This document shows, piece by piece, positions 11,653 to 62,644 of a stretch of 64,000 bases of DNA. The stretch's first letter is position 1; the number at the start of each line of letters is the position of its first letter. The stretch lies in the IMG/VR virus record IMGVR_UViG_3300027896_005002, positions 186,001 through 250,000 of that record; one strand, 5' to 3'. The position numbers and the translations under genes were made by a program. The notes beneath the pieces are model-generated. The model saw only the letters and a list, made by a program, of their open reading frames with translations. It searched no databases and was not told where the DNA came from.

Positions 11653-12831
11653 TTAAAACCGTTTTGGATCGTTCTTTTTAACTGAAGTTGAAGTTGAAGT
11701 ATTAAGTAATTTATCAAATTGAATTGAAAGACCAAGTTGTAGCATTGCTCCAAGATAAACTGTTTCTTGAGGTCCTGCTGTTATTTTCGGAAGATCAATG
11801 ATGGATAACATGAATCGAGTGATATTTGATTCAAGTCGTACATAATCTGCCGAAATATCGATGTTTAGCATTTTGAGCATTTGATCACGGTTAACAGCTC
11901 CGAGAGCGGCAGGAAGTGCAGTATTTTCCAAAACTGTTTTAATACTATGTGCTTCATATGCAAGCGCCCTTGCAATAGGAATGCCAAAACCGGCAAAGAT
12001 TTTATTAATTACATTAATAACAGTTTCAGCAGAGTCTCTTACAGCTGAAGCATCGGGTGGTGCCATCATAGGAGCCATTAAATTATTTGGAGAAAGAGCT
12101 GCCATAATTGCGCTGGTTATTGCAGCAGGATTAGACCCACCTTGTATCCATGCTTGTTGCCAAGCTGAAAGTTGTTTGTAAAAATCACTGAGTGTTATCC
12201 AAAGTTTGTCATCCAATTTTGTCAAGAAACTTTTCTTTCGAGTTTGTGTTACAAAAGAACCTTCAATACCTAATACTGATAATACATCAGCATAGTTCCT
12301 TTTGATGACTAAATTACGAAGAGTGAAATATTCTGTGCCACAAGGAATTTCGTTACTTTCAGCAAAATTCTCCATTTTATCTTTGATAACATCAATGATA
12401 TCGAATAAGCCAAGCCTGTTTGCAATTGCCGATCTCATTGCGCAAATTATTTCCATTGGTCCAACTTTTAATTCTCCACCTGTTTTGAGAGCTTTAATAA
12501 AACTCTCATCATCAGGTAATGACGGCAAAACATCCAAAGAAAAAGAAGCTGACGATGTTGGTGCTATCGGTGGAACAGCCTTTGGTCCACGTAGTAAATT
12601 TACATTCTTTTTCAAAACACCACTCGGAATTTTGAGTGCTGCAAGCGCATTTTTAATATCTTCAAATGATGCAGCTTCTTCATCAGCCAATATCATCAAA
12701 GCATCATCACTTGGAGAGCCTACCACTGTTAATAATGCTTCATTAACATCACTTAAATTCTTGTTAACTGCTTTTGCAAAAGCACCAACTTTTGTGTCCC
12801 AACCTTCAGGCACTTTGATTTCTTCACTCAT
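11653..12831 (-). CDS. Hypothetical protein, third gene of vWA / kinase-NadM operon
   Basis: 392-aa helical ORF, ATGA overlap with the upstream kinase gene. Confidence 0.6.
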   Translation of the reverse strand: MSEEIKVPEGWDTKVGAFAKAVNKNLSDVNEALLTVVGSPSDDALMILADEEAASFEDIKNALAALKIPSGVLKKNVNLLRGPKAVPPIAPTSSASFSLDVLPSLPDDESFIKALKTGGELKVGPMEIICAMRSAIANRLGLFDIIDVIKDKMENFAESNEIPCGTEYFTLRNLVIKRNYADVLSVLGIEGSFVTQTRKKSFLTKLDDKLWITLSDFYKQLSAWQQAWIQGGSNPAAITSAIMAALSPNNLMAPMMAPPDASAVRDSAETVINVINKIFAGFGIPIARALAYEAHSIKTVLENTALPAALGAVNRDQMLKMLNIDISADYVRLESNITRFMLSIIDLPKITAGPQETVYLGAMLQLGLSIQFDKLLNTSTSTSVKKNDPKRF

Positions 12832-14513
12832 ACAACCTCCTGTTTAAAGTAAATTATTTCATCATCACCATCAAATTCTGTTTTATTATAGGAAAATTGA
12901 ACTATATTATTATTCCATTGTACAATTGTGTTTTTTGAATAAGGATCTATTATTTTGCAAATATCATCAGTGTCGTTAATTGCCTGAATTAAACTTTCTT
13001 CAGGTGTTGAATATCTTGTTACATGAACTGAATATAATAATGTCTTAAAACATGATGGATCATCATTTAATAAAAGAACTGCTTTTACTATACCTGGAAC
13101 AAATTCAATGTTTGGTTTACCATACATTATTCGTAATTCTGCAAATGACAGAATCTTTTCAACTCCCATAGCAGCATAATCTTGAAAAGTACGATAATCA
13201 TTATTTTTGACAGAATTCCTAATTATTTCTCCCCATGATTTGGGTATACCATCATACTCTGTACAAAATAAATGTTTTTGTTCTATAATGGGCATTTCCA
13301 TATCTGAAAATAATTCATGGACATCAGGATTACTTGATGCTACAGTTATTAATTTTTCTTTTTCGGGCATCATAGCAAAATGCATTCGTAATTCTTTTTC
13401 AGTTTTGTAAAAAGGTGTCAAATAAAATTTAAAATCATCTTTTGAATAACCTAATTCAAGCAAAGATTGAGCGACCATTTTCATCACTAGCCATTTAGGT
13501 ATTGGATCACGATCTGTTATTGTATATGATCGTTGTATTGAAATTATGAGCTTATAGCCCAAATCAAGAATACGCGTCATATATTTAATATGACCACTAT
13601 GAGGAATACCCATCCGTGCAGGGAATAAAACATATTTGTCACTTGAAGATTTTATTCCTCGATGTTTGATATATCGATATGTTTGATTTTCTAAATATGA
13701 ATTAGTAAATACTTCTGTACACGTTTTAAGTGTTGGTCGTTCAACAGGATTTAATTTTAACATTTTTGAAATAATTACAAATTCATCTTTTACATTAGCT
13801 TCTTTCGATAAAGTTGGATAATGTCTATCGGCACATTCGCACAAATCCATAGTTCTAGGTTCAAATGGTGTTGTATCAAATGGATGTATACCTGTAAAAA
13901 GCTCATGTGCAATTATACCAAGTTGGAAGACTATTGATTTTTCACTAACTATATGATTAAATACGGTTTCAGGTGCAGCATATCGAGGATGTGAAATTAT
14001 ACCAATTTGTTCAGTATCATTTGTTTTTAATTGAGTAAGACCCAAATCAATTATATACACATTACTAATAGAAATTAAAACATTTTCAGGCTTTATATCT
14101 AAATATAGTATTTGTTTTTTATGAAGTAATTCTATTTTTAAAATTAATGTACCTAAAATAAAAGATACATCGTTTGGTAACAATAAATTATCAGGTTGAC
14201 AATAGTTTGCCAACGACTGACCATATGTAAAAGAAGTTTTAATAAACTTATTACCGTCAATATCAACAGTACCATAATATTGAGGTAAGAGTGGAACAGG
14301 ATGATTTACTAAATACTCATATAATTCATCTTCATTTAAATAATCTCGAAGATCTTTTTTGTAATTATAAACTTCTTTTAATATTTTGAAAATACCATCT
14401 GTGTCACGTATTAATAAAACAGTCGACCTTTTTTCATGAACACTTTCGAAGCTTTGCTGTAATACAGAAATTAAAGAAATATTGTGAAGTTTACACCATT
14501 GATTATAATTCAT
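12828..14513 (-). CDS. Ser/Thr protein kinase fused to NadM/NMNAT-like (HxGH) nucleotidyltransferase
   Basis: Kinase: YLDIKPEN, IDLG, YAAPE, GIHPF. C-half: FPARMGIPHSGH, RDPIP, SSNPDVHELF, WGEIIRN, paralleling NadM GRFQPFHxGH / NPF / SNNPLV / SGTxIR. Confidence 0.75.
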   Translation of the reverse strand: MNYNQWCKLHNISLISVLQQSFESVHEKRSTVLLIRDTDGIFKILKEVYNYKKDLRDYLNEDELYEYLVNHPVPLLPQYYGTVDIDGNKFIKTSFTYGQSLANYCQPDNLLLPNDVSFILGTLILKIELLHKKQILYLDIKPENVLISISNVYIIDLGLTQLKTNDTEQIGIISHPRYAAPETVFNHIVSEKSIVFQLGIIAHELFTGIHPFDTTPFEPRTMDLCECADRHYPTLSKEANVKDEFVIISKMLKLNPVERPTLKTCTEVFTNSYLENQTYRYIKHRGIKSSSDKYVLFPARMGIPHSGHIKYMTRILDLGYKLIISIQRSYTITDRDPIPKWLVMKMVAQSLLELGYSKDDFKFYLTPFYKTEKELRMHFAMMPEKEKLITVASSNPDVHELFSDMEMPIIEQKHLFCTEYDGIPKSWGEIIRNSVKNNDYRTFQDYAAMGVEKILSFAELRIMYGKPNIEFVPGIVKAVLLLNDDPSCFKTLLYSVHVTRYSTPEESLIQAINDTDDICKIIDPYSKNTIVQWNNNIVQFSYNKTEFDGDDEIIYFKQEVV

Positions 14514-17041: not shown

Positions 17042-17959
17042 TCATATTGATTTAAAATACCATTGTCTACTATATGCTGTGTCAAAATCAGACCATTCAC
17101 TATTTTGTCTTTGTTTTAATTCATCAAATCGTGAACAATAACTATTAATCATGTCACTAAAATGCAAAATTACTGCTTCTTTCATTAAAGGCTCAATTGG
17201 CGCTCCCCATTCTTTTTTACCATGATGTGATAATAATAAATGAACTAATTCTGCAAATTTCTTAGGTGGAACGTTATCAGGTAAAAGTTTTGTGATGATG
17301 ATGATGCCTAGTGTTGTATGGCCTACAAGTTTACCTGGCGTTGAGCGATCAAAAGATTTGTCATAAGTATATTCTTTTATTTTGCCAATATCATGTAATA
17401 AAGCACCAGTAATTAGTAAACTGTAATTTAAATTTTCAGGTGATGAATTATGTATTGATGAACATAATTCAGCTACTTCGATAGAATGTTTAAACAATCC
17501 GCCAATATGTGCTTGATGATTACTTTTAGCTGCAGGTGCTTTTATAAAATCATCAAACACATTATAATTTACACTATCAATAATAGAACTAAAATGTTCA
17601 TCAGTAATAGATTTGCAAAGTTTTGAATATCTAGTTTTCAGATTTTCAAATTCTTCTTTTGTTATTGATGGAAGGTTAATTGACTTTTCTGTTTTAGAAA
17701 TTTTGATAACATCAATTTTGCGATTGTTATTAAATTCACCAACATGGCCTTTTAATAAAACAATATCATTTTGTTGAACTTCATCACCGTCGTCGTATCT
17801 ACAAACTTGAATATCCCAAATAAAGGCACTTATATCATTTTGACCATCATTAATTGTTAATTTAATGAAGTCTTCTAATTTTTTTGTTTTTTGTTTTGCA
17901 ATTGATTTAACGACGACAACAGCGGAAACTGTGTCGCCGACTTGAAACTTATCAATCAT
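17042..17959 (-). CDS. yhaM: YhaM/Cbf1-like OB-fold + HD 3'-5' exoribonuclease
   Basis: N-terminal OB fold; PAAKSNHQAHIGGLFKHS, LLHDIGKIKEY, GH, SHHG..EWGAP, LHFSD. Confidence 0.85.
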   Translation of the reverse strand: MIDKFQVGDTVSAVVVVKSIAKQKTKKLEDFIKLTINDGQNDISAFIWDIQVCRYDDGDEVQQNDIVLLKGHVGEFNNNRKIDVIKISKTEKSINLPSITKEEFENLKTRYSKLCKSITDEHFSSIIDSVNYNVFDDFIKAPAAKSNHQAHIGGLFKHSIEVAELCSSIHNSSPENLNYSLLITGALLHDIGKIKEYTYDKSFDRSTPGKLVGHTTLGIIIITKLLPDNVPPKKFAELVHLLLSHHGKKEWGAPIEPLMKEAVILHFSDMINSYCSRFDELKQRQNSEWSDFDTAYSRQWYFKSI

Positions 17960-17971
17960 TTAAAACCTTTT

Positions 17972-18631
17972 CTATACTTTTTCAAATCCAATGAATCCAT
18001 CTTTTATGAATATTTTGACAGCACCTTTTTTGACTGTTGTACAGGACCGGGGAATACTGATTCGACCGTCTGCATGAACTCTTAATGTTGCAGGAATATT
18101 TTTAATAGCAAATTTCTTATCCGTTACTTTTTGATGAGGTCTCAATCCAATTGCTCTTGCAATTTTTGCAGGAATATAAAACCTATCAGATTTGTCGGCA
18201 CTTACAGCATTAAGTAATACGATCTTTTTTGATGATTTTTTTATTGTAGTCATGGCTTGCGTCGGTTGTGCTACTTTGGTCCCAGTTAAAGGATCAACAC
18301 CATGAAGTCGCTGAAATTCATCCGGTGTCATTGCACTAATATTTGTATCTGTAAATGAATTAACGTTAAATGATACTGGATGATATAAATATGCCCTATC
18401 TTTTCCACCATTAACACTGATCAACGTTGCAGTGTAATTTAATGAAAGACTTGAAACCAAAGAACCCATACTGTTTCTCAGCCAATCCGCAACATCAGTG
18501 TTTCTCATCCATTTCCCATCCATTTTAATAGCATTTGCAAGATGCACTGATGTAAATGCTGTTGACTGCATCAAAAATTCAGTCGCCTTTGCTTTAACAA
18601 TGTCAATCTGGCCCTGCGTTAAGTTGCACAT
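17972..18631 (-). CDS. Hypothetical protein (possible C-terminal swapped-hairpin DNA-binding repeats)
   Basis: DKSDRFYIP and HADGRISIP repeats resemble AbrB-like DxxGRIxIP. Confidence 0.4.
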   Translation of the reverse strand: MCNLTQGQIDIVKAKATEFLMQSTAFTSVHLANAIKMDGKWMRNTDVADWLRNSMGSLVSSLSLNYTATLISVNGGKDRAYLYHPVSFNVNSFTDTNISAMTPDEFQRLHGVDPLTGTKVAQPTQAMTTIKKSSKKIVLLNAVSADKSDRFYIPAKIARAIGLRPHQKVTDKKFAIKNIPATLRVHADGRISIPRSCTTVKKGAVKIFIKDGFIGFEKV

Positions 18632-19244
18632 AGCATCATCCTTTCATTAATGTAAATATAATTATACAAACCATAAAATCAAACATAAAGTATTAAAACC
18701 CAAATAAAAAGAAGCAAGAACTTTTTTCCAGCCTTTGCCCCATATTACTATTGGAATATTAAGAATTGTAATTGCAATAATCAATCCTATTACTACTATC
18801 ATTTTATCACGCATTTGATTTATCTTGTAAATCTCTTTGATTCGCTCTTGCTCTTTTTGCAAGAAGTCTCTCATATTCTATTTTAGCTAATTTTCGCAAA
18901 TAAATTTTTACATATGAACTATTATCATTCCCACTAATAATAAATCTTAATTTATCAATTTTTTCATCATCAATTGGTTTATCCTCCTGCTCTAAATTTT
19001 TAGCAATTTCTTTATATAATGGAAGATTTTTTTCTTTAACAATTTTCTTAAATCTCGAATCAAGTCTTGCCTGTGCAGTGCGACGAGTAAGTACATTTTG
19101 TAAAAGTAAAATACGTTTATGTTGTCTTACATTAATTTTAGCCAACTGAGAGACTTCATTTTTTAGTTTCTTAATTTCAATTTCATAAGTATTTTCAAAT
19201 AATCGTTTTATTGTTTCTGGACATTTTAAATTGAAAAAATTCAT

Positions 19245-20693
19245 TTACTTATCCATTTCAATTAAATAAGTAAGAGTTTGTTGATTTAAATTGGGAACAA
19301 TAAATTCATCATTGTAAAGTGATGATCCACCTTTAGCCCAAATACTATTAAAACCGGATGGAACTCCACTACAAGATGACCGAACTTCATAAAATTTTCC
19401 TAATAAAACATCTGCAATAAATAGAAACACATTGTTACTTCTTGATCTATTTGATGAATTCCAGAAATTTGTAGAATAATTTAATGATTTTGTGCTTGCA
19501 CTTGCAAAGTATATTCCATCGCCAAAAGCTCGTCCACTAAAAGTTGGGCAATTGCATGGAGGAATTATAAGTCCATTTTTCATAATACTAAGAATATTGC
19601 AGTTTTTAGACCCATGAAATAATTCCCTTTTATTGTCGTATTTTGTTTTTGTTGATTCGTATCTTGCTCTTTCATGAGGTATTTTAATTTTAAAGATATT
19701 CTTTATTTTATAGAACCAAACATCAGCTCCTTGATGATTTCGGGCTTTTGACGTTTCAACATATGTTTTTATTCGTTCAAATTCTTTTGTATCTATTAAT
19801 TCTTCAATTTCAACACCTATTGCATTTAATTTTTGTGAAGCATTTTTATTTAATGCAGCACCCATTTGGACAGCAGATTCAAGTTGTTCAAGAAGATCAT
19901 ATTCCTGCATTAATTTATTATCATCCAAAATCCAGTCACTTTCTTGAATTTTGCGACCAAACTGATGAGGAATTAATGAAAAATATAAATTGTTGTTAGT
20001 TCTTACAATTTGTGAATCATTATTTAATTTACTATTTTTCAATTGTGTTTTTAAAGAATCAAGAGCAGTCTGTGCTTTTTTAACTTGATCTTTTGTAATT
20101 GGTCCTAAAGGCGTTTCTAATCCATTTGATGTTAATGTCAATGTAGTTAAAGATGTAATATTGTGAATATTTTCTTCAACAATTTGATCAATGATTCTTA
20201 CAATTTTTTGATTTTTAATAGTTGATGTATCAATTGCTGCTTTTTTTGTTGAAGTAATTTGTACAGATTTGTCTCGAATGTTTGAAGAACCTACTTTAGG
20301 AGAGAATGTTTGCACTTCTTCGTAGTTTTCTCTACGGCTATCGGATAAGCCTCTATCGTCTTTAATACTTTTTCCTCGAAGTTTGCTCTTTATAATTGAA
20401 TCAAATTCATTTTCAACAACTGACATATCTGTGATCGGTCTATTAGTATTTTCATCAATGTCTCTGACACCAAAGACTTCTGATAATCCTAATCGACCAT
20501 AATGAGAGAATAAACGATACCAACCTATTTTTGGATTATGTTGAAGTTCTAAGCAATAGAATTTATTGTTATTGCCCTCAACATTGCCGCAATGTAAGAC
20601 CTTGAATTTTTTAGTTTCTGTAAAACCGCATTTTTGAGGATCATAATCATAACCTCCGGGCTTCACTTTACGTTCTTTGAATTTTGCAGCCAT
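19245..20693 (-). CDS. WGR + helical regulatory + catalytic poly(ADP-ribose) polymerase (PARP)
   Basis: NNNKFY..HYGRLG (WGR); TPLGPIT..YFSLIPH (regulatory domain); FHGS, FGDGIYFA, KSLNY, NDEFIV (H-Y-E triad). Confidence 0.88.
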   Translation of the reverse strand: MAAKFKERKVKPGGYDYDPQKCGFTETKKFKVLHCGNVEGNNNKFYCLELQHNPKIGWYRLFSHYGRLGLSEVFGVRDIDENTNRPITDMSVVENEFDSIIKSKLRGKSIKDDRGLSDSRRENYEEVQTFSPKVGSSNIRDKSVQITSTKKAAIDTSTIKNQKIVRIIDQIVEENIHNITSLTTLTLTSNGLETPLGPITKDQVKKAQTALDSLKTQLKNSKLNNDSQIVRTNNNLYFSLIPHQFGRKIQESDWILDDNKLMQEYDLLEQLESAVQMGAALNKNASQKLNAIGVEIEELIDTKEFERIKTYVETSKARNHQGADVWFYKIKNIFKIKIPHERARYESTKTKYDNKRELFHGSKNCNILSIMKNGLIIPPCNCPTFSGRAFGDGIYFASASTKSLNYSTNFWNSSNRSRSNNVFLFIADVLLGKFYEVRSSCSGVPSGFNSIWAKGGSSLYNDEFIVPNLNQQTLTYLIEMDK

Positions 20694-20720
20694 AACTCAT
20701 CCTTTTAATTTGATTTAATT

Positions 20721-22200: not shown

Positions 22201-23517
22201 TTAATTTTCGTCTGCAAAATCAATATCTTCGAAAGGTTGAAGATCTTCAAGTTTCACTGCCCATAAGTCATCGTTGAATTTTTGCTCGCTATCTGTTAAG
22301 GTATTCAAGTCCGACTTCATAGCAAATGAAAAATATTTTGAATTGTTAGCAGTTTTGTTCATACTTGTATCGCCTGCTTTTAGGTTTTTAAACCCGGCTT
22401 TTGCGAAGAACAATTGGAAAATAGCTGGATCAATGTAATGCCTTCTTGCAACTTTCGGTGTATTTCCCAAAAATTCTGAAACAACATTTGAGGCTCTCTT
22501 AACTGAATTTTTTGCATCTTTTTTTGTAAATTTAACAACATTAATATCATCTAAAAATTCTTTGGCAATTTTTGATGCATGATAATGTCTGAAATGATGA
22601 ATTGTTACATTCGATCCAAGATTTTTTCTTAAATATCTATTGACTAATCTTGGGGAAATCCTAAATTGTTTTTCTCCTTTTTTGAAAGTAAATATGGAAT
22701 CTTCTGGTCCTTTACTAGTAATTAATTCCTGTAAATTTCGTTTAACAGGAGCAGATACTTCTATTGTATGTTTTTGAGGTATTTCATCTTTTCCAGTATA
22801 ACTAAATTCTATTTTATTATTGTCTTTAAAAGTCATATGTTTTACTTTTAAATTATGAAGACCTCGAACATCATTCTGTTCACTCTTTTTATTACCTACT
22901 CTCATAGCACATTGATCAACTAAAGCAATTGCAGTAGCATATACTCTCGACCGAACATTAGTACTATTTAAATCTGTATTATATTTTTCTCTTATGCTTG
23001 GTAATAATTGACCAAAACGTTGATTATTTGCAAATTTAATTTTCTTATGCTTTTTAATATAATTTTCTGTATAATAATGCTGCTTTTTGCCAGACTTTGG
23101 ATGACGCTGAATTGCATAATAAACGTCATCAGTTTTACTTTTCCATTTAGGATTAATTTCAACCTTAACACCTGAATAAAATCCATGAGTTGTATTAAGA
23201 CGTTTGCCGTCTTTTGTAAAAAATTCAGGATGAGTCTTAAATGTAATTTTTGCTTTTTCTTTTCTTTTAGATTTAATGTCTTCTTTTTTACCTTTTGTCT
23301 TAGACTTAGGTTCATCAAATTTAATATCACCTCTTTCTATTACATCATCTAACTCATTGTATTTTTTATGCAAAGCATTCAAACGACGTTGTTCTTCAGG
23401 AGGTAATGATTTGAAGACAACCATGTTTCTGGTTTTAGGATTGGGAAACTTTTTTCCCATCCACCATGGTTTAGCTATTTTCAAAAATTCTAGAGAAATT
23501 TGAGCTAAATGCTTCAT
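22201..23517 (-). CDS. DNA topoisomerase IB with N-terminal shared leader
   Basis: Catalytic pentad MRVGN, GKD, HHFRHY, LGNT, RRHYIDP; starts MKHLAQISLEFLKIA. Confidence 0.88.
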   Translation of the reverse strand: MKHLAQISLEFLKIAKPWWMGKKFPNPKTRNMVVFKSLPPEEQRRLNALHKKYNELDDVIERGDIKFDEPKSKTKGKKEDIKSKRKEKAKITFKTHPEFFTKDGKRLNTTHGFYSGVKVEINPKWKSKTDDVYYAIQRHPKSGKKQHYYTENYIKKHKKIKFANNQRFGQLLPSIREKYNTDLNSTNVRSRVYATAIALVDQCAMRVGNKKSEQNDVRGLHNLKVKHMTFKDNNKIEFSYTGKDEIPQKHTIEVSAPVKRNLQELITSKGPEDSIFTFKKGEKQFRISPRLVNRYLRKNLGSNVTIHHFRHYHASKIAKEFLDDINVVKFTKKDAKNSVKRASNVVSEFLGNTPKVARRHYIDPAIFQLFFAKAGFKNLKAGDTSMNKTANNSKYFSFAMKSDLNTLTDSEQKFNDDLWAVKLEDLQPFEDIDFADEN

Positions 23518-24728: not shown

Positions 24729-24970
24729 TGAAACGAATCAACTTCTTGCTTTAATGAACGACATTTGATTCTTTAACCAAAATTAAAGAATTAGAGATAT
24801 CATTCTCCACAAGCTTAAAATTCCTATTCTCCATAGGTACTTCATTTAATATCTCTATCTTCCACTAACCCACATTCACATTTATAAATTCTATCATTTA
24901 ATGATAATTCACTCATTCTATTGTATACATAACATTGTTTAGTAGATGGATACCATTATCAATTATTTTT
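24729..24970 (-). pseudogene. tnpB: Degenerate 3' fragment of IS200/IS605/IS607-family tnpB with omegaRNA/right-end-like sequence
   Basis: Minus strand reads WYPSTKQC...ELSLNDRIYKCECGLVEDRD, then in a shifted frame VPMENRNFKLVE, then AAGCAAGAAG; broken by stops and frameshifts. Confidence 0.65.
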
Positions 24971-26443
24971 AATTAAATCAATAGCCTCATCTTTTGTCAT
25001 ATCTGGATTTTGCATCAACTGATCTTTCAAATAATTAAGTATTTTACCAACTTCTGGTCCTTGTGGTATATTTAATATTTGCATAACTTCATTACCAGAT
25101 ATTGGCAATTTTATTTGCTCTATAGGTTTTTCTTCCTGTAATTGTTTTATTCTATTTTTCAATTCTATAAATTCATCCATATTAGTATGGTCAGCCACAT
25201 GACTCATTCTGTCAGCTTCAATCAAATTCAACACATGTTCTAATTCAGGTCCCATATCTCTTATAAATCGTCTAACAGAAGCTTTAGACCATGTTTTTGA
25301 ATCCCTTGTTCTCATATGTGATTCAACAACTTTTGAAACTATATTTATCATATCATTCGGATATTTCATTCTTTTCATTACATCTTGAGTAATATTTTTT
25401 GATACATCATCATGAGCGTAAAAATGAGTACCTGATTCAGTAACAGTTCTTGTATCTGCTTTACCAATATCATGAAATACTGCTGACAATCTATCTGTTA
25501 AAGTTGGTTTTGATTGCTTCAATACATCCATTGTATGAGTCCAAGCATCAGCATAGTGAAATTTACCTTGTTCGATACCTTCAAGTTTTAATAATTCTGG
25601 CATGAATTGTTTTAATAATCCAGTATTTTTTAATATTTCAAGACCTCTGCTTGGATTGTTTGTCAATAATATTTTATTAAATTCATCTTGAATTCTTTCA
25701 GCTGAAATAAAATTAAGTTCTTGCGCATTAGTTTTGATTGCAGGTTCAATATCATCGGCAAATTTAAAATTGTATTTAACAGCAAAACGTACAGCTCTCA
25801 TCATGCGAAGCGGGTCGTCATTAAATGTAATGTTGGGATTTAGAGGTGTACGAATTATGCCGTCGTTTAAGTCTTTTAAACCTTTGCCAGTTAAGTCTAA
25901 TGTTTTGTTATTAGTAAGATCATATAGTAGAGAATTTATCGTAAAATCTCGACGTTCTACATCTTCTTGTATTGTACCAAAAGAAGTCTTTGGTTTACGA
26001 CTATGTTTTGCATATTCTTCATTTCTTGTTTGAACAAATTCAACTTCAACACTATTTTTAAGTTGTATTTTGGCAGTACCAAAAGTTGGAAATATAACGG
26101 GTTCTCTAATACCTAGTTTTTTGCTGATATATTCTGCAAGTTTAATTCCACCATTTAAAGCTGTGACAGTAATATCAATGTCTTTAGATTTTTTACCTAA
26201 TAATTCATCGCGAACAAATCCGCCAGCAAGAAATGCATGATTTGCAAATGGAGATTCTTTAATAATTGAACTTAACAATTTTATTGATTGTTGTTCTTTG
26301 GTTTTTGACCGTGGTCTACCTGTAAGTTTTTTCTTTGAAAGAGGATGTTTATTTAAATAATCTTTTTGTTGTCGAAGCGTAAGATCATCCCACGAAAGCG
26401 CAATTTTGATAAATTCACGATTTATTTTTAAAAAGTTAGTCAT
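24959..26443 (-). CDS. cca: CCA tRNA nucleotidyltransferase (class II, HD domain) with N-terminal shared leader
   Basis: GGFVRD, DIDI, RRDFTINSL, DDPLRMMRAVRF, ERIQDE, FHDIGK. Likely start at 26443: MTNFLKINREFIKIALSWDDLTLRQQKDYLNKHPLSK. Confidence 0.9.
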   Translation of the reverse strand: MTNFLKINREFIKIALSWDDLTLRQQKDYLNKHPLSKKKLTGRPRSKTKEQQSIKLLSSIIKESPFANHAFLAGGFVRDELLGKKSKDIDITVTALNGGIKLAEYISKKLGIREPVIFPTFGTAKIQLKNSVEVEFVQTRNEEYAKHSRKPKTSFGTIQEDVERRDFTINSLLYDLTNNKTLDLTGKGLKDLNDGIIRTPLNPNITFNDDPLRMMRAVRFAVKYNFKFADDIEPAIKTNAQELNFISAERIQDEFNKILLTNNPSRGLEILKNTGLLKQFMPELLKLEGIEQGKFHYADAWTHTMDVLKQSKPTLTDRLSAVFHDIGKADTRTVTESGTHFYAHDDVSKNITQDVMKRMKYPNDMINIVSKVVESHMRTRDSKTWSKASVRRFIRDMGPELEHVLNLIEADRMSHVADHTNMDEFIELKNRIKQLQEEKPIEQIKLPISGNEVMQILNIPQGPEVGKILNYLKDQLMQNPDMTKDEAIDLIKNN

Positions 26444-27111
26444 ATAACCTTTAACGTTAAATTGACACAATTATTGCTATAATATAAGAGAATCTATTAA
26501 GTTTTTATTTTATTTTTGTAAATAATCCGTGATCGCTTATGTATTAGAAGGTCGCGAATGTCGAGGAGAGTTGTAAGAATTAATTTTTGATTAGTAATAA
26601 CTGCATCAGTCAAATTCATTCTGAGGACAACGTCTTCAGCACTAACAAATGCTTTTCGTATGTCAGTTCTTCTAGATATCGTCAAAACTTTCTTCTTCAT
26701 CATCATTGCTAGTTAAGTCATCCTCATCCATTATTTGCATCATTTCTGACAAATCTTTATCAAAATCAAGTTCGTCATCAAGTATACTACCATCGTCGTT
26801 CGAAAAATCATCGTCGTTAAATTCTTTCATGTTTTCTACTCATTTTTTAATTCAAAACCATTTTGTCTAACAATTCTGGTTACTATATTACTTGATTCTA
26901 TTGGAAATGAGCCAATTTCACGATCATGTTTAAAATCATCTTCATAATGGTAGAGTGAATTAAATTTTCCTTTTAATTCTCTTGACATTCTGCTAAGAGC
27001 TACGACCAATCTTGAATCAGCTCTACCAACTTTATCCTGAGCTAAAACAATTAAATGCCCAACATTACCAACTTTTTTAATAATCATATATACTCTTTTC
27101 ATTTAAATTTG

Positions 27112-44748: not shown

Positions 44749-47700
44749 TTACCCGCACCGCGAGTCTCCACATTGCAGGCATTTGTAGCATCCGCCTTCC
44801 ATAATAACTGAATTTTCTGCTCCGCAAGCTTCACATTTCATACTAATTACTGTTCCATCTTTTATTGTTAACGATATGAATTTTCTAACAGCCGTCAACA
44901 AACTTGAAATATTGTCACCCTCAATGTTTCGCAATGCAATTAATATATCTTCTCGTTTGATGTTGTGTCTTAAACAAAGTGAAATCATGCGTCCCAATCT
45001 ATTGTAAGAATAATCTACTTTCGCTTTGTCAATACACTGTTGAATTATTGAATTATCAACTCCTTTCTCAATTGCTAATTGTGCTAATTTTCTAGACGCT
45101 TTATTACAAACTTTAACCTGGCCAATTTCTCTGCTATTACTATATATCCACAAACATATTGGATATTTCATGTCAGTATCTTCGGGCAAGAAACTAAAAT
45201 GTATGTAGAATTTTTGACCTTCTCTTTTTATAATTCTTGTTGGTCCATTTAAAAATACTTCTGGAAGTTTAATGTCTCTTTTAATGATTTTTTGTTCTTT
45301 GTTAGCTTCTTCTAAACTGGAGATTACCGATTCCATACAACCGTCTCTATAGGTCGTAAAACCATTTAATCCCCGTTTCCAAGCATCAATATATAATTGT
45401 TTAAAATTTTCAAAAGGAAAGTCATGAGGTACATTACAGGTTTTAGAAACTGACTGATTACAATAATATTGAACAACTTCTTGAATATTGAGATGATCTT
45501 CAGTCTTTAAATCTTTTGTAGTTACTAAATAAGCAGAATGATCTTTATCTGGAAAGTTATCTAATAGCCATTGATAACCATAATCTCTTACAATGTTTAC
45601 TTCACATAATCCTCTATTATGAGGTTCATAATAATATATTTTACCGTTATAAGACCCTCTCCAATATTCAAAATCTTTCTTTTTGTGATATTTCAAAACA
45701 TCTTTTACATTATCATCACTTAAACCTTCAGGCCACAAACCACATATTACAATACGTTCATATTCTAATGAAAAAACTGGTTCAATAGCATTTGACACAT
45801 TATTACAAACTATAGAACTATTTCCTAATGGTGGATTTGTGGTCGTTTTAGCATTTCGTACACCATGCTGAATTATTAATTCTTTTGTTTTATTCCACAA
45901 TCTGTCAGATAAAAAATATTCTGTATTTTGAAATTTTTCAGTATTATATGCTGTAAATGTTCCTTTTTCTTTTGCTAACAATGCCGATGCTTGCCATACA
46001 AGATTTTCCTTCAATTCACATATTTTCTTTGTAAATTTTATAGCCTCTTTTGAATTATATGACATTCCCAACATAAATAATGCCGATCCCAAACCATTAA
46101 TTCCCATACCAAATTGACGAAAATTTCTTACAACATATTCATATGATGGTAATGGCAAATTAGTCAAATCATTAACATTATCTAACATTCTTGCAAAAAT
46201 GCCTATATCATAAGCATACTGATCAATATCAAATTGTGGTTTCCCATCTTTATCAATATAAATATATTGAGTAATATTCAATGATCCAAGTAGGCAGACA
46301 GTTGTAATTGATGATAATCCGCCGATTTCTCCGCAATTTTTAACAAATATGCCACTACTTTGTAAATATCTATCATCATCAAATGATGTAATAACTGCAT
46401 AATTATGATTGTCATCAACTGTAATATTATAAACATCTTCATAACCATAAAACTCAATACTTTTTACTTTATGATTAGCTTCAGCAATTCTTTCAGCTGC
46501 TTTAAACATTTTACTCATTGTAGCATAATTTAAATTTTCAAGTCTATATTTTGAAAATGTTGGTAATTTATTAGTTTTTAATCTTTGTATTATTTCTCGT
46601 TTGCATGGTGATTTTTTATATTTAATTTTAAAATTTTTAATTATTTCTATAATTTTATTGAAATAATCTTCATTAGATATTTTAGCAGCTCTACCATTTT
46701 TTAATCCCGACACAGCTTCACTCATATTTTTATGATATCGTTCGGGATCTTTTATTCTTTTTGGAAAATCATACATTGGATTTTTTTTACCACTAATATC
46801 ATGAACCATATCATGTTCTTCAACCGTCATTTTCTTCAAATTTTCAGGTCGATCATTATAATGATTAAAATCATCATGATGTATTCTATGTAATTTAGAA
46901 TCAATTAAATCATTAGGATAGTAAAATTCATATATTAATCTATATTGTCGTCTGCTTAAACATAATCCTGAAGATTTTTTTAATTTTGATGACTGAGCTA
47001 TTTGTCTATAAGTAGTATGTCCATAACTTATATAAGAATCAAAAGGAACAATACTGTCACCAGGTATTAAATCTTTTAGATTAATCTCAGTACCTTTACT
47101 AGAACATATTTTGTGATCAGGAGTAGCAATAAAATAAGAATTATCATCTAATGTTAATTTCCATACTTCTTTCTTTTCGCCTGTTTTTCGTGGATTTCGA
47201 CCCATTTTAATTTCAACAGCGCCTGTAGAAAAATTTCTTGAATATACAGGAACATCTTTAGCTTCTTCAGCTAATTGTTTAAAAGTCACACCATTTCTTC
47301 CATCAGCGACAGCTGCTATTGATGAACCAATTACACATGGATTTGTTGTGTCGCATTTACCGAGATATGCTAGCGGATTATTTCTGTGCATGTTGTCAAC
47401 AAATAATACTCCAGGTTCTGCTCTATTATATGTTGACTGCATTATCAAGTCATATAGTTCTCTTGCTTTAATTCTTTTGTAAACTTTACCTTTAAAATGA
47501 AGATCATATAAATCATCGGCAACAACTGCTTCCATGAATTTATCATCAATTAAAACTGATAAATTGAATTTTGTTAAAACTCCTGAAGATTGTTTTACAC
47601 GAATAAATTCTTCAATATCAGGATGATGACACGGTAAGACGCCCATCATAGCACCTTTTCGTGTCTGCCTCTTCATTATGTTTTTTAATTCATCAAATTG

Positions 47701-48336
47701 TTGTACAGTTAAATGATTTTTTAATTTGTCAACATACCCATCATCAGTTCCTTTAACCATACATTCTGAAACTGTGTCCCATAATTTTGCATAGGATAAA
47801 ACACCTGGATGTCTAATTCCAGTGCCTTTGATTACTGCATTTCGAGGTCTAATAAAACCTAAATTTATTCCATAACCGCCTTCAGAAGCCAGTGTTTTGG
47901 CTTGTTCCATTATTGTCAAGAAAATATTTGTGAGATCATCTGGATTATCATCTGTTTCAATATCAACATCATAAATTACAGATTTATCTTCAGTTTGTCG
48001 TTTATATTTTATTGATGCACCAGAAACAGGTCCATTAATAAAACAATTCATTAATGTAGCATTTTTATAATCTGTTCCTAAATTGGCAGTTATTCTACCA
48101 CCTAAAGTCACTTTAAGACCCATAGGTTCTTTATTAGGATAACCATTATCATCAACATCGAAATCGCCATCAAATTTTAGTAGAGTTTGTAAAAAGGGCT
48201 TGTACCATTTTTGGGGATCTTTTTCAACAGATGCAAGAGTTTTTGCACATCTTATAAAAGTTTCAAGTTCTGATTCATTTTTATACTGATACTTCTTCTC
48301 CCAATTCTCTTTTGCAAGTGATGTTTTGAAAATCAT
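44749..48336 (-). CDS. nrdJ: Class II (AdoCbl-dependent) ribonucleotide reductase with intein
   Basis: NCF, GGYG, RKGAMM, HPDIEEFI, FNLSV, AEPG, TNPC/CGE, CLLGSLN, QSVSKTCN, C-terminal Zn ribbon; no R2 gene in window. Confidence 0.88.
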   Translation of the reverse strand: MIFKTSLAKENWEKKYQYKNESELETFIRCAKTLASVEKDPQKWYKPFLQTLLKFDGDFDVDDNGYPNKEPMGLKVTLGGRITANLGTDYKNATLMNCFINGPVSGASIKYKRQTEDKSVIYDVDIETDDNPDDLTNIFLTIMEQAKTLASEGGYGINLGFIRPRNAVIKGTGIRHPGVLSYAKLWDTVSECMVKGTDDGYVDKLKNHLTVQQFDELKNIMKRQTRKGAMMGVLPCHHPDIEEFIRVKQSSGVLTKFNLSVLIDDKFMEAVVADDLYDLHFKGKVYKRIKARELYDLIMQSTYNRAEPGVLFVDNMHRNNPLAYLGKCDTTNPCVIGSSIAAVADGRNGVTFKQLAEEAKDVPVYSRNFSTGAVEIKMGRNPRKTGEKKEVWKLTLDDNSYFIATPDHKICSSKGTEINLKDLIPGDSIVPFDSYISYGHTTYRQIAQSSKLKKSSGLCLSRRQYRLIYEFYYPNDLIDSKLHRIHHDDFNHYNDRPENLKKMTVEEHDMVHDISGKKNPMYDFPKRIKDPERYHKNMSEAVSGLKNGRAAKISNEDYFNKIIEIIKNFKIKYKKSPCKREIIQRLKTNKLPTFSKYRLENLNYATMSKMFKAAERIAEANHKVKSIEFYGYEDVYNITVDDNHNYAVITSFDDDRYLQSSGIFVKNCGEIGGLSSITTVCLLGSLNITQYIYIDKDGKPQFDIDQYAYDIGIFARMLDNVNDLTNLPLPSYEYVVRNFRQFGMGINGLGSALFMLGMSYNSKEAIKFTKKICELKENLVWQASALLAKEKGTFTAYNTEKFQNTEYFLSDRLWNKTKELIIQHGVRNAKTTTNPPLGNSSIVCNNVSNAIEPVFSLEYERIVICGLWPEGLSDDNVKDVLKYHKKKDFEYWRGSYNGKIYYYEPHNRGLCEVNIVRDYGYQWLLDNFPDKDHSAYLVTTKDLKTEDHLNIQEVVQYYCNQSVSKTCNVPHDFPFENFKQLYIDAWKRGLNGFTTYRDGCMESVISSLEEANKEQKIIKRDIKLPEVFLNGPTRIIKREGQKFYIHFSFLPEDTDMKYPICLWIYSNSREIGQVKVCNKASRKLAQLAIEKGVDNSIIQQCIDKAKVDYSYNRLGRMISLCLRHNIKREDILIALRNIEGDNISSLLTAVRKFISLTIKDGTVISMKCEACGAENSVIMEGGCYKCLQCGDSRCG
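46336..47337 (-). mobile_element. Intein (334 aa) with HNH-type endonuclease in RNR active site
   Basis: TTNP|CVIGS...ATPDHK...RIHHDDFNHYNDRPENL...DVYNITVDDNHNY...FVKN|CGE. Confidence 0.88.
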
Positions 48337-60235: not shown

Positions 60236-62644
60236 TTACATCCTCAAACTTTTCTTTTTCTTATCTTTTTTATCATCCGCTTCTTTTTTTTCTTCTATTT
60301 CTTCACCAACTTCATTTGGATCTGCAACTGCTGAATCTGGAACTTCTTCCTCTATAGTTTCTTTCTTTGTATAGAATTTTCCATCTTTGATCAAACATTC
60401 AACCGTTTCCTTAAGTTTTGGCTTTTCTTCTAGAATAGTGTAAAATTTCTTTTTACCAAAATCTTTAATATCATCATACATCTTTTCACCAGCAGTATTA
60501 ACAAAATTATACCTTGTTATTGTCTTTCCATCTTTTTCTACATCAAACTCTTTTATAATACCGTTCATCAGAGCAACACTGAACATTTCCTGTTCATTGT
60601 TAACACCGGATCCATCATGTCTCAAAGTAAAGACAATTGCATCTTCAGGCATTGAACCTGCTTTATTTTTATCAAAAGTGACTTTAACATCATGTGAAAG
60701 TACATTGCCAACTTCATCTCTTACTTCAGACTTCCAGACTTTAGCAACTTTTAGAGCAATTGTATTATAGAATGGTAATGCATTTCCACCAGTACGATAT
60801 TCCGGCGAGTTGTGAACAACAACTCCCGAAAAATCACTACTGGAACCAACCATATAAGTATTTACTGGTGTTTGAATGTCGTACTTAGTTAAACATTTTG
60901 CTTCTTTATCAGATATTTCACAAATCTTCAATACTTTAGTATAAATTTTATCTCTTTTAACTCTTTCGATATGTTTTAATTCTTGATAATTATTAATATG
61001 TTCATCTAATAATTTGTATTGCATTTCAGGAATAACAAATTGACAAATTAGTTTACTAAAATAATCAATATTAATAATTTTAAGTTTAAAATGGCCTTCA
61101 GTATCTAATTCAACATCAACATCAAATTGTTTAAATTTTTTAATTAATGACTCAAACAATTTAATTTGTACATTAGTATCAAGATAATCGAATCTTCTCA
61201 TTGAAATACTAGCTTTTTGACGTTCTTTCCAAATAGATCCATCATCTAAATAAAATATAGCTAAGCCTAATAAATCAACTTTGTCAATAATCTCAGAAGT
61301 AAAAGACCTATAATGTTTGCCTGAATTTTTAAATAATTTTTCACTATAATCATTTTCATAAAAATGTTTGTAATACTTCAAAAGAAACATTTCTGATTCT
61401 GTTCTAAAAGAATTTTTTCCTATTGAATAAAATTTTAATGATTTTAATTGTTTAATTTTCCACATTAAATATTCAGGTTGTTCAGAATTAGCAAATGAAA
61501 TTGAAGCAGATAAACATCCTCTAGTTTGCATAAATCCGTCAGCTAACATTGATCCTATTAAAATTTGTTCTTCTTCATTTGACAATGGATTATTACAATA
61601 ACTTAATAATTCATCACCAATTGCTAAATTTTGAGCTTCTACCCAACCATTTTTTGTAAAAATTTTATGATTTCTAGTACAAATTAATTTTTGATACATT
61701 CTATGAGTTGGTACTTCAAAACATACTTTTATAAACTCTGACCTATCTGCCATTCCATTATTGTAATATTCTAATGGTTCGAATTCGTCAAATGTATCTG
61801 TCTTTTCATTATAAGAAACCATAGTTTCTTTTATTTTATGTTTTACAAAACTACTAGATGAATAAATATCATTAGTAGTATGAATTTTTGTACTTGCATG
61901 CATACAACCAAACATTTGATTAGGATTTTTTCGAAGTTGGTTGATGAAGAATAGAATTGTTTTTGAATCAACATCAAATCGAGCCATAGCGGATGACACT
62001 TTCTTCAAGCCCAATCCAATTGCAGTAGCTTGTGTCCCGCGTTGCCTTGTTTCATTCATTCCTTTAGTGGCATCAACTTGAGAGACCATTTGTGTTACAC
62101 TATCAAAACCGATGATAGCATAATTTCCAGGTGCTGTTACTTTTACAACATTGCCTGTTTTTGCATCAACTTCATGTTCTCCTAAAATTAAACTGTGAGC
62201 AATATCAAAACCTTCTTCAGCAGTCGATATTGGTATCACAATCAATTTCGATATATCAACTCCCACTGATGCTGCCCATCTTGCCTGAAATTGAAACTGA
62301 CGTTCAGCATCAATCAATACACATGGTCTATTAGGCCATCTTTTTTGAGCTTCTGCAAAAGCTAAATAAAGAAGTAATGTTTTACCAGCACCCTCCCAGC
62401 CAAAAACTTCAATAACAGCTCCGACAGGATAACCACCATAAGGACCAATGGCACTATTAAGTAAAATTGAACCTGTTGATATTCCTTCAGGTAAACTTTT
62501 ATATTTCTCACCAGCTGGTTCAATACTTCGGCCAAATTTTTTCCTAATAAGTGATGCTGCATTTACAGTAATTGTCTTTTTCTTTTTAGTACCAATTTCA
62601 TCGTCATCTTCTTCATTTTCAATTGTGGTATCTTCTTCAGCCAT
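60236..62644 (-). CDS. recA: RecA recombinase with intein
   Basis: STGS..L..A.G..GG.P, GWEGAGKT, IDAE, DSV, FINQLR, MFG|SPE..TGGNAL.FY, KNK. Confidence 0.92.
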   Translation of the reverse strand: MAEEDTTIENEEDDDEIGTKKKKTITVNAASLIRKKFGRSIEPAGEKYKSLPEGISTGSILLNSAIGPYGGYPVGAVIEVFGWEGAGKTLLLYLAFAEAQKRWPNRPCVLIDAERQFQFQARWAASVGVDISKLIVIPISTAEEGFDIAHSLILGEHEVDAKTGNVVKVTAPGNYAIIGFDSVTQMVSQVDATKGMNETRQRGTQATAIGLGLKKVSSAMARFDVDSKTILFFINQLRKNPNQMFGCMHASTKIHTTNDIYSSSSFVKHKIKETMVSYNEKTDTFDEFEPLEYYNNGMADRSEFIKVCFEVPTHRMYQKLICTRNHKIFTKNGWVEAQNLAIGDELLSYCNNPLSNEEEQILIGSMLADGFMQTRGCLSASISFANSEQPEYLMWKIKQLKSLKFYSIGKNSFRTESEMFLLKYYKHFYENDYSEKLFKNSGKHYRSFTSEIIDKVDLLGLAIFYLDDGSIWKERQKASISMRRFDYLDTNVQIKLFESLIKKFKQFDVDVELDTEGHFKLKIINIDYFSKLICQFVIPEMQYKLLDEHINNYQELKHIERVKRDKIYTKVLKICEISDKEAKCLTKYDIQTPVNTYMVGSSSDFSGVVVHNSPEYRTGGNALPFYNTIALKVAKVWKSEVRDEVGNVLSHDVKVTFDKNKAGSMPEDAIVFTLRHDGSGVNNEQEMFSVALMNGIIKEFDVEKDGKTITRYNFVNTAGEKMYDDIKDFGKKKFYTILEEKPKLKETVECLIKDGKFYTKKETIEEEVPDSAVADPNEVGEEIEEKKEADDKKDKKKKSLRM
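60809..61906 (-). mobile_element. Intein (366 aa) with LAGLIDADG endonuclease
   Basis: QMFG|CMHAS...CTRNHK...LIGSMLADG...LAIFYLDDG...KYDI...VVHN|SPE. Confidence 0.9.

Follow-up and report, generated by a model that had tools for sequence, protein, structure and literature searches.

A PARP-type ADP-ribosyltransferase gene with WGR, helical and catalytic modules in a huge-phage genome from freshwater

A 64,000-nucleotide stretch of IMG/VR virus record IMGVR_UViG_3300027896_005002 (positions 186,001 to 250,000 of the record; hereafter the window) carries a gene, here called P0001, whose 482-residue product is almost surely a PARP-type ADP-ribosyltransferase (ART) built from the same three modules as human PARP2 and PARP3, namely a WGR domain, a helical domain and a catalytic domain. 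Judging from its conserved residues the enzyme is very probably active, and NAD+ is, by family membership, its predicted substrate. The reading favoured here, and held with moderate confidence, is that P0001 is a DNA-break-activated, chain-extending PARP that takes part in phage DNA metabolism.

The record as a whole is a 416,029-bp virus sequence from a freshwater metagenome, with a CheckV completeness of about 77%, a GC content of 31% and 28 tRNAs. The one sequencing run located is a DNA run, probably the source of the record; no RNA run turned up. Because a tail sheath (4e-26), a tape-measure protein and tail proteins are encoded in it, the record is attributed to a contractile-tailed phage; Terminase_6N, also sought in the record as a phage hallmark, was not found. 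Both ends of the record, bases 1-200 and 415830-416029, fall within one short-period repeat made of CCTGAATAACC-like units, so that assembly probably stopped within a repetitive gene and the ends may connect. The PARP gene and the site preceding it are the following:

19245..20693, minus strand: PARP gene P0001, 482 amino acids plus stop codon (open reading frame list and translation; Pfam, PHROG and PDB matches).
20696..20704, minus strand: Shine-Dalgarno-like AAGGATGAG, a few nucleotides 5' of the PARP ATG (read from the letters).

The frame is a single uninterrupted open reading frame (ORF) under translation table 11, occupying exactly 19245..20693 on the minus strand, and no alternative genetic code is needed. 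Pfam places the PARP catalytic domain (PF00644) at residues 302-439 (2.7e-30; 105.8 bits against a cut-off of 26.7 bits) and PARP_reg (PF02877) at residues 164-286 (3.4e-12; 47.1 bits against a cut-off of 26.8 bits), and PHROG 23333, labelled just 'polymerase', covers the protein end to end at 2.8e-47. The padloc and NCBIfam libraries gave no match. Among solved structures (phmmer against PDB), human PARP1 constructs spanning the WGR, helical and catalytic domains came first (9e-25), followed by PARP2, PARP3 and PARP4. An AlphaFold2 model made from the family alignment (pLDDT 82.6, pTM 0.78) was superposed by Foldseek, over about 500 columns, onto the same three domains of PARP1 and onto PARP2 on DNA breaks, with E-values from 2e-26 to 1e-24; its catalytic region matched the catalytic domains of PARP1, PARP2 and PARP4 at E ~1e-20. 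The layout of the protein, from its N terminus, is as follows:

20619..20693, minus strand: N-terminal basic segment, residues 1-25, with K9 invariant (alignments; pLDDT 80-89).
20319..20618, minus strand: WGR domain, residues ~26-125 (Pfam, family profile, model, column counts).
20214..20318, minus strand: linker, residues ~126-160 (alignment invariants; pLDDT).
19806..20213, minus strand: helical domain of the PARP regulatory, autoinhibitory type, residues ~161-296 (Pfam PARP_reg, model, alignment with the PARP1 helical domain).
19248..19805, minus strand: ART catalytic domain, residues ~297-482 (Pfam PARP, PARP1 alignment, column counts).

All three modules are real in P0001. The WGR domain scored 21.7 bits in Pfam, marginally below the 22-bit cut-off, and is accepted because of the Pfam matches of the relatives, the family profile and the fold match. 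A precomputed WGR match is present in most of the 120 listed relatives, and a profile built from 22 relatives over their first ~130 residues reached the PARP3 WGR structure across the whole domain at 5.8e-07 and the PARP2 WGR at 5e-05; in the model this region is a beta-sheet with one helix. Conservation was counted by column in 32 relatives of P0001 that are 45-74% identical to it, with positions mapped through a HMMER alignment to PARP1. In these counts N41, N43 and K44 of an NNNKFY motif are invariant, and NNNK[FY]Y is common to the WGR domains of the huge-phage family and of PARP3 and PARP2. The W-G-R motif itself reads Y65-G66-R67, with all three residues invariant. The basic N-terminal segment is specific to the huge-phage clade, being absent from the aligned Klebsiella, XacN1 and megaplasmid PARPs. 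The linker holds invariant P132, G135, S136 and N138 (PxVGSxNIR) and then the low-confidence residues 145-158 (pLDDT <50), after which the helical domain is modelled with helices at 162-182, 201-217, 228-240, 258-282 and 285-292. The initial annotation had described the gene as a PARP with WGR, autoinhibitory helical and H-Y-E catalytic modules in a phage, a description borne out by Pfam, the family profile, the fold match and the tail genes.

In the catalytic domain, the triad H360, Y395 and E463 aligns with the LWHGS, GIYFA and YNEYIV motifs of PARP1 and is invariant in 32/32 relatives as well as in distant homologs; G361, K402, N405 and Y406 are likewise invariant in the 32, and G361 and Y406 also in distant PARPs of phages and bacteria. 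The nicotinamide site includes G361, S403 and Y406 (PARP1 G863, S904 and Y907). The invariance of the triad, of G361 and Y406 in the nicotinamide site and of H320 and K402 in the acceptor site implies purifying selection on what is presumably an active enzyme.

The catalytic Glu had been taken in the initial annotation as associated with polymer synthesis. The Glu of H-Y-E is indeed present, but by itself it is insufficient to predict a polymer, because PARP3 and PARP4 have H-Y-E and yet carry out solely mono-ADP-ribosylation (PMC10711553). Acceptor-site features relevant to poly(ADP-ribosyl)ation are, in PARP1, K903, H826, M890 and the L985/Y986 backbone. Mutation of K903 turns PARP1 and PARP2 mono-ADP-ribosylating, and PARP4 has Thr at that position; H826 is missing from the shortened loops of PARP3 and PARP4, and K903 is missing only in PARP4 (PMC10711553). 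The equivalents in P0001, H320 (for H826) and K402 (for K903), do not vary among the 32 relatives, nor in the homologs from Klebsiella, XacN1, the Pseudomonas megaplasmid and Lyngbya. Of the relatives, 26 have Met at the M890-equivalent position, 4 have Leu and 2 have Ala, with P0001 counted among the Ala cases; the L985/Y986 region of P0001 reads Y-N, after a much shorter loop. At H320 and K402, then, the acceptor site is PARP1/2-like and compatible with synthesis of poly(ADP-ribose) (PAR). Because the acceptor-site residues for chain elongation are conserved, P0001 is probably, if only just, a former of oligo- or poly(ADP-ribose).

It is proposed that the WGR domain (Y65-G66-R67 and NNNKFY) and the basic N-terminal segment would dock on a DNA strand break, and that this binding would distort the helical domain and so free the NAD+ site from its block. 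ADP-ribose would then be moved by the ART domain (H360/Y395/E463) from NAD+ to P0001 itself and to nearby DNA-bound proteins, with release of nicotinamide; the product would probably be oligo- or poly(ADP-ribose), not a single unit. P0001 would in this way serve the replication, recombination and repair programme of the phage as a marker of breaks, whether in its own DNA or in that of the host, and the phage's own Preiss-Handler genes (PncB, NadD-type and NadE) would refill the consumed NAD+. By analogy with characterized enzymes of the same layout, activation by DNA breaks is likely. A physiological role in phage DNA metabolism is a more tentative proposal, plausible but somewhat short of probable.

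Several observations weigh against this reading. Tyr stands in place of the W-G-R tryptophan, and P0001 itself has Ala (A389) at the M890 equivalent. The loop before E463 is ~28 residues shorter than that of PARP1, and PARP2 and PARP3 are also longer there. The best structural match of the catalytic domain is PARP4 (TM-score 0.76), a mono-ADP-ribosylating enzyme, and only PARP4 among human PARPs aligns unbroken through the short loop. The search for PARG or macrodomain partners that had been proposed in the initial annotation found no macrodomain, bacterial PARG or ARH in the 416-kb record, which is ~77% complete. Finally, the reading draws support from the place of the gene within a long co-directional array on the minus strand that contains replication, recombination and repair genes (topoisomerase IB, ligase, SbcC/SbcD, UvsX-like, ribonucleotide reductase and YhaM-like), but the argument from this repair-block setting is one of guilt by association.

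Part of this evidence would be accounted for if P0001 mono-ADP-ribosylated like PARP3 and PARP4, perhaps on DNA ends or on one protein target. H-Y-E is no guarantee of poly(ADP-ribosyl)ation (PMC10711553), the unbroken alignment and top TM-score both point to PARP4, the WGR domain is nearest to that of PARP3, A389 replaces the acceptor-site Met, and a PAR eraser was not found in the record. Against this, the equivalents of H826 and K903 are invariant, and it is their absence or mutation that gives mono output in PARP3/4 and in PARP1/2 mutants (PMC10711553). Moreover, a short loop ahead of the Glu is found in every phage and bacterial PARP aligned (an alignment without the bacterial enzymes HaPARP and CdPARP), and bacterial PARPs of WGR, regulatory and catalytic layout form PAR (PMC5966428). 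Purely mono-ADP-ribosylating activity is accordingly regarded as unlikely, and polymer or oligomer synthesis continues to be slightly preferred.

As to erasers, the eukaryotic PARG model had no match in the record, but it matched no control genome either and is uninformative; a Nudix search of the whole record was empty. A reversible PAR signal is unsupported by the record, though host erasers could act. NADAR proteins are ADP-ribose-linked hydrolases, and the only candidate of that kind found in the record is the following:

Record ~103.5 kb (L024 1438-1899), plus strand: NADAR-domain protein, 153 amino acids (Pfam 82.6 bits), ~100 kb from the PARP gene.

This protein may have a counter-defence or eraser function; nothing ties it to the PARP.

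An enzyme that modifies host targets irreversibly would fit the lack of a detected eraser. P0001 could be a host-takeover or counter-defence effector comparable to T4 Alt, ModA and ModB, one whose host substrates might be RNA polymerase, a nuclease or a defence protein, with DNA binding serving just to localise it. Iyer et al. 2021 (PMC7824862) put forward such a role for jumbo-phage PARPs, and host manipulation is also suggested by nearby genes for a Ser/Thr kinase and a sigma factor. However, the full WGR domain and the autoinhibitory helical domain are kept, which would be needless for a constitutive effector; P0001 matches no padloc or anti-defence family, and it has no known target. This role is considered rather unlikely, although it is compatible with P0001 being a DNA-break PARP.

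The supply of NAD+ was also raised in the initial annotation, which placed a NadM-like fusion ~5 kb from the PARP gene. The gene at that distance is a tRNA CCA-adding enzyme:

24959-26470, minus strand: tRNA CCA-adding enzyme, 503 amino acids, PolyA_pol head plus RNA-binding and HD domains (PolyA_pol 6.5e-26; PHROG 2244, 1.4e-64).

It lies ~4.3 kb from the PARP gene, is the sole nucleotidyltransferase at that distance and is almost certainly what had been read as the fusion. Candidate ORFs for a NadM-like fusion in the 64-kb window lacked supporting Pfam or PHROG matches, and HxGH and Nudix signatures occur in none of the ORFs of the window. The single CTP_transf_like gene of the record encodes a NadD-type adenylyltransferase with an N-terminal extension of ~100 amino acids, ~31 kb from the PARP gene and outside the window. 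The record further encodes PncB (408 bits against a 379-bit cut-off; ~96 kb from the PARP gene), a glutamine-dependent NadE (634 bits), an NAD-dependent LigA and a weak PncA-like ORF. The loci concerned are:

Record ~173.5 kb (L002 1387-2316), ~301.5 kb (L003 1489-2664), ~304 kb (L025 1411-3018), ~311.5 kb (L026 427-2397) and ~291.5 kb (L027 1348-2304): loci that between them hold the PncB, NadD-type, NadE, LigA and PncA-like genes, all outside the window.

PncB, the NadD-type enzyme and NadE together make up a phage Preiss-Handler NAD+ route. In two related loci such genes adjoin the PARP itself, NadE and LigA at L004 and NMNAT-like and isochorismatase-like genes at L005. The NAD+ theme of the initial annotation is therefore retained for the record and for the surroundings of relatives' PARPs, but not as a NadM-like neighbour in the window.

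PARP hyperactivation drains NAD+ in eukaryotes, and an enzyme of the P0001 type uses NAD+. On that precedent P0001 could act as an NAD+ sink, its hyperactivation by damage killing or arresting the cell so as to shut off the host or exclude superinfecting phages. A phage that makes NAD+ by PncB, the NadD-type enzyme and NadE, and whose own LigA needs NAD+, speaks against such a function, which is judged very improbable.

A word-based search returned 699 homologs of P0001, the best 120 of which are 44-76% identical to it and ~470 amino acids long, many of them on contigs of 260-470 kb. In IMG/VR, 8 loci with relatives were found, on contigs of up to 543 kb. The family is rare in one-per-species cellular genomes, where it occurs in a 971-kb Pseudomonas megaplasmid, a few cyanobacteria and a contig (L008, 48%) of an 'Altiarchaeales' metagenome-assembled genome (MAG). 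The relatives P0006 and P0043 are filed as archaeal MAGs (Nitrosarchaeum and Nanoarchaeia), and the archaeal-labelled relatives, L008 included, are 48-69% identical to huge-phage genes. These Nitrosarchaeum, Nanoarchaeia and Altiarchaeales entries are probably mis-binned phage contigs, not archaeal PARPs. The nearest PARPs outside the clade of P0001 come from other phages and megaplasmids and are 26-30% identical to it, and by this measure P0001 belongs to a prokaryote/phage PARP lineage. The term 'eukaryote-like' used in the initial annotation is an overstatement, the nearest outside relatives being phage and megaplasmid PARPs with a shorter loop before the Glu.

Two members of the family depart from the usual form. 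At L021 7911-9473 (on a 543,035-bp phage contig) the PARP has an insertion of ~26 residues just ahead of the catalytic His motif. At L020 7968-9335, which is the same as L033 3380-4744 (on a 259,732-bp phage contig), the PARP is split into a 150-residue WGR ORF and a 285-residue helical-plus-catalytic ORF, 55 nt apart; this may reflect either a frameshift in the gene or a PARP that is naturally made as two chains. The gene P0137 beside the split PARP, belonging to the partner family described below, was read on 11 contigs, and the split PARP itself was read in L020/L033. The split gene is a point in favour of P0001 being a decaying or inactive relic of horizontal acquisition, but its catalytic residues are all invariant across the clade at 41-76% identity, its ORF is intact and a ribosome-binding site is present, and that explanation is scarcely credible.

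One neighbour of the PARP gene is conserved in related phages:

17972..18631, minus strand: candidate partner gene, 219 amino acids, downstream of the PARP gene on the same strand.

In an all-against-all comparison of 11 loci (the P0001 locus and 10 related huge-phage loci), a homolog of this partner lies 0-6 kb downstream of the PARP in 10/10 of the related loci, while other neighbours turned over. The link between PARP and partner is strong but not obligate. A search from the partner side gave 23 homologs, many of them on contigs equal in length to PARP-bearing ones, with the PARP adjacent in L032 and L033; obligate pairing was ruled out by L031 and L034, which have the partner with no PARP within ~7 kb. 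No partner gene is present at the more distant PARP loci of phages and bacteria that were compared, and the synteny is not reported in the literature searched. A gene of the Nuc_deoxyri_tr2 family (nucleoside deoxyribosyltransferase-like) lies between PARP and partner at L032 4554-5048, and another, at L034 2767-3294, precedes the partner by a few kb in a locus with no PARP in reach; it is one more neighbour with a nucleotide-processing function.

Members of the partner family are ~200 amino acids long, with a winged-helix-like domain at the N terminus joined through a variable linker to a SpoVT/AbrB (MazE-like) domain at the C terminus; MazE_antitoxin is above the Pfam cut-off in two homologs. 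In the model (pLDDT 84) the conserved N-terminal domain has an H-H-H-beta-beta topology. Foldseek against PDB gave nothing at E <= 0.001 for the partner, with weak matches to PadR, MarR and TFE winged-helix structures (probability 0.8-0.94, E ~0.1), and the assignment of this domain as a winged helix-turn-helix is tentative. The padloc and NCBIfam libraries held no match to the partner. Prediction of a complex of PARP and the 219-residue partner scored 0.00 in two runs, which is neither support for binding nor evidence against it.

In a bolder scheme, huge phages would use eraser-less, break-triggered PAR signalling, with PARP and the winged-helix/AbrB protein forming a two-gene module, fuelled by the Preiss-Handler genes, that labels or shields phage DNA ends or brings order to repair factors. 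The scheme is speculative and, taken as a whole, quite unlikely; if true, viruses would have a counterpart of the eukaryotic PARP response to DNA damage, evolved or retained outside eukaryotes.

The co-directional array that holds the PARP gene further includes genes for an SLT transglycosylase, a sigma factor, an ATP-dependent DNA ligase, SbcC and SbcD. Other features of the window are as follows:

12828-14513, minus strand: protein of 561 amino acids with a eukaryote-type Ser/Thr kinase domain (7e-24), the ~290-residue C-terminal half of which has no family assignment.
17042..17959, minus strand: YhaM-like OB-fold plus HD phosphohydrolase, putative 3'-5' exonuclease (Pfam HD 5e-13 plus OB fold).
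18807..19244, minus strand: ORF of 145 amino acids, its ATG following immediately on the stop codon of the PARP gene.
22201-23517, minus strand: topoisomerase IB, eukaryote-type, 438 amino acids (Pfam Topoisom_I 1.2e-40), two genes upstream of the PARP gene.
44749-48336, minus strand: ribonucleotide reductase large subunit with an intein (Intein_splicing 4e-11).
60236-62644, minus strand: UvsX-like recombinase with an intein and a LAGLIDADG homing-endonuclease insert.

The YhaM-like protein matches the NCBIfam YhaM model over its full length at 134 bits, under the cut-off, and a gene of this kind is near the PARP in 4/11 loci, a loose association. The 145-residue ORF has no family match and is not conserved in relatives. 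Promoter-like sites around the PARP gene are no more frequent than in shuffled sequences and no terminators were found there, leaving the transcription unit not definable. The kinase at 12828-14513 matches the defence-library kinase models mad6 and PD-T4-6. Topoisomerase IB of eukaryote type is uncommon in phages.

PARPs with WGR, helical and catalytic domains are already annotated and discussed in phages (Perina et al. 2014; Iyer et al. 2021). Although phage PARPs have been noted since 2014, no biochemical or functional study of one was found in the literature searched. P0001 represents a large conserved clade in phages of 260-543 kb, with hundreds of metagenomic homologs, and is a good candidate for a first biochemical study. 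If it is break-activated and polymer-forming, it would follow that PAR signalling acts in phage-infected bacteria, a finding relevant to the dispute over where eukaryotic PARPs came from. The conserved, putatively DNA-binding neighbour, the absent PARG and the co-occurring NAD+ genes each offer a concrete, testable hypothesis. For annotators, close relatives of P0001 under archaeal MAG names are probably to be treated as mis-binned phage contigs.

Among known systems, the T4 proteins Alt, ModA and ModB gave no match to P0001 in any search made. They belong to another ART clade, have no WGR or helical domain and carry out mono-ADP-ribosylation only. Their likeness to P0001 is that of phage-encoded, NAD+-dependent ADP-ribosyltransferases active in infection (PMC7824862).

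Human PARP4 (vault PARP) gives the best catalytic TM-score and is the one that aligns unbroken through the short C-terminal loop, but it has neither the K903 nor the H826 equivalent and performs mono-ADP-ribosylation only (PMC10711553), whereas P0001 keeps both residues. Human PARP1 is the top sequence match for the helical and catalytic domains (9e-25), and H826, K903, G863, S904 and Y907 are conserved between the two; P0001 differs in having no zinc fingers or BRCT domain, a loop shorter by ~28 residues and Ala for M890. Human PARP2 and PARP3 share with P0001 the minimal arrangement of WGR, helical and ART domains and a short basic N terminus; the WGR profile is best against PARP3 and PARP2, and the full-length fold matches PARP2 on breaks. 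Identity to these two is nonetheless ~20%, and P0001 has Tyr for the WGR Trp and fewer residues before the catalytic Glu. PARP3 is without the H826 equivalent that P0001 keeps as H320 (PMC10711553), and the HPF1 system is not expected in bacteria.

The PARPs of cultured phages, which fall in PHROG 23333, include gp111 of Klebsiella phage vB_KpM_FBKp34, ORF414 of Xanthomonas phage XacN1 (BBA65562.1) and those of Stenotrophomonas phages CM1 and RAS14 and Cellulophaga phages phi4:1 and phi17:2. Phage PARPs were listed by Perina et al. 2014 (PMC4245714), and BBA65562.1 is an example in Iyer et al. 2021 (PMC7824862). They resemble P0001 in the three domains (helical and catalytic only in the Cellulophaga phages), the short loop before the Glu, H-Y-E and the equivalents of H826 and K903. 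They are 27-30% identical to it and are without the basic N-terminal segment, the WGR insertion, the PxVGSxNIR linker and the winged-helix/AbrB gene of its clade.

The closest functional parallel comes from cellular bacteria. HaPARP of Herpetosiphon aurantiacus (Haur_4763) and CdPARP of Clostridioides difficile CD160 were shown to be DNA-dependent and PAR-forming (PMC5966428). Compared by description only, they are like P0001 in the order WGR, PARP_reg, PARP_cat and in H-Y-E; they differ in being cellular and each paired with a bacterial-type PARG (DUF2263), whereas P0001 is phage-encoded and no PARG was found with it. As the only prokaryotic enzymes of this WGR, regulatory and catalytic kind shown to be both DNA-dependent and PAR-forming (PMC5966428), HaPARP and CdPARP would, by analogy, be the best functional model for P0001.

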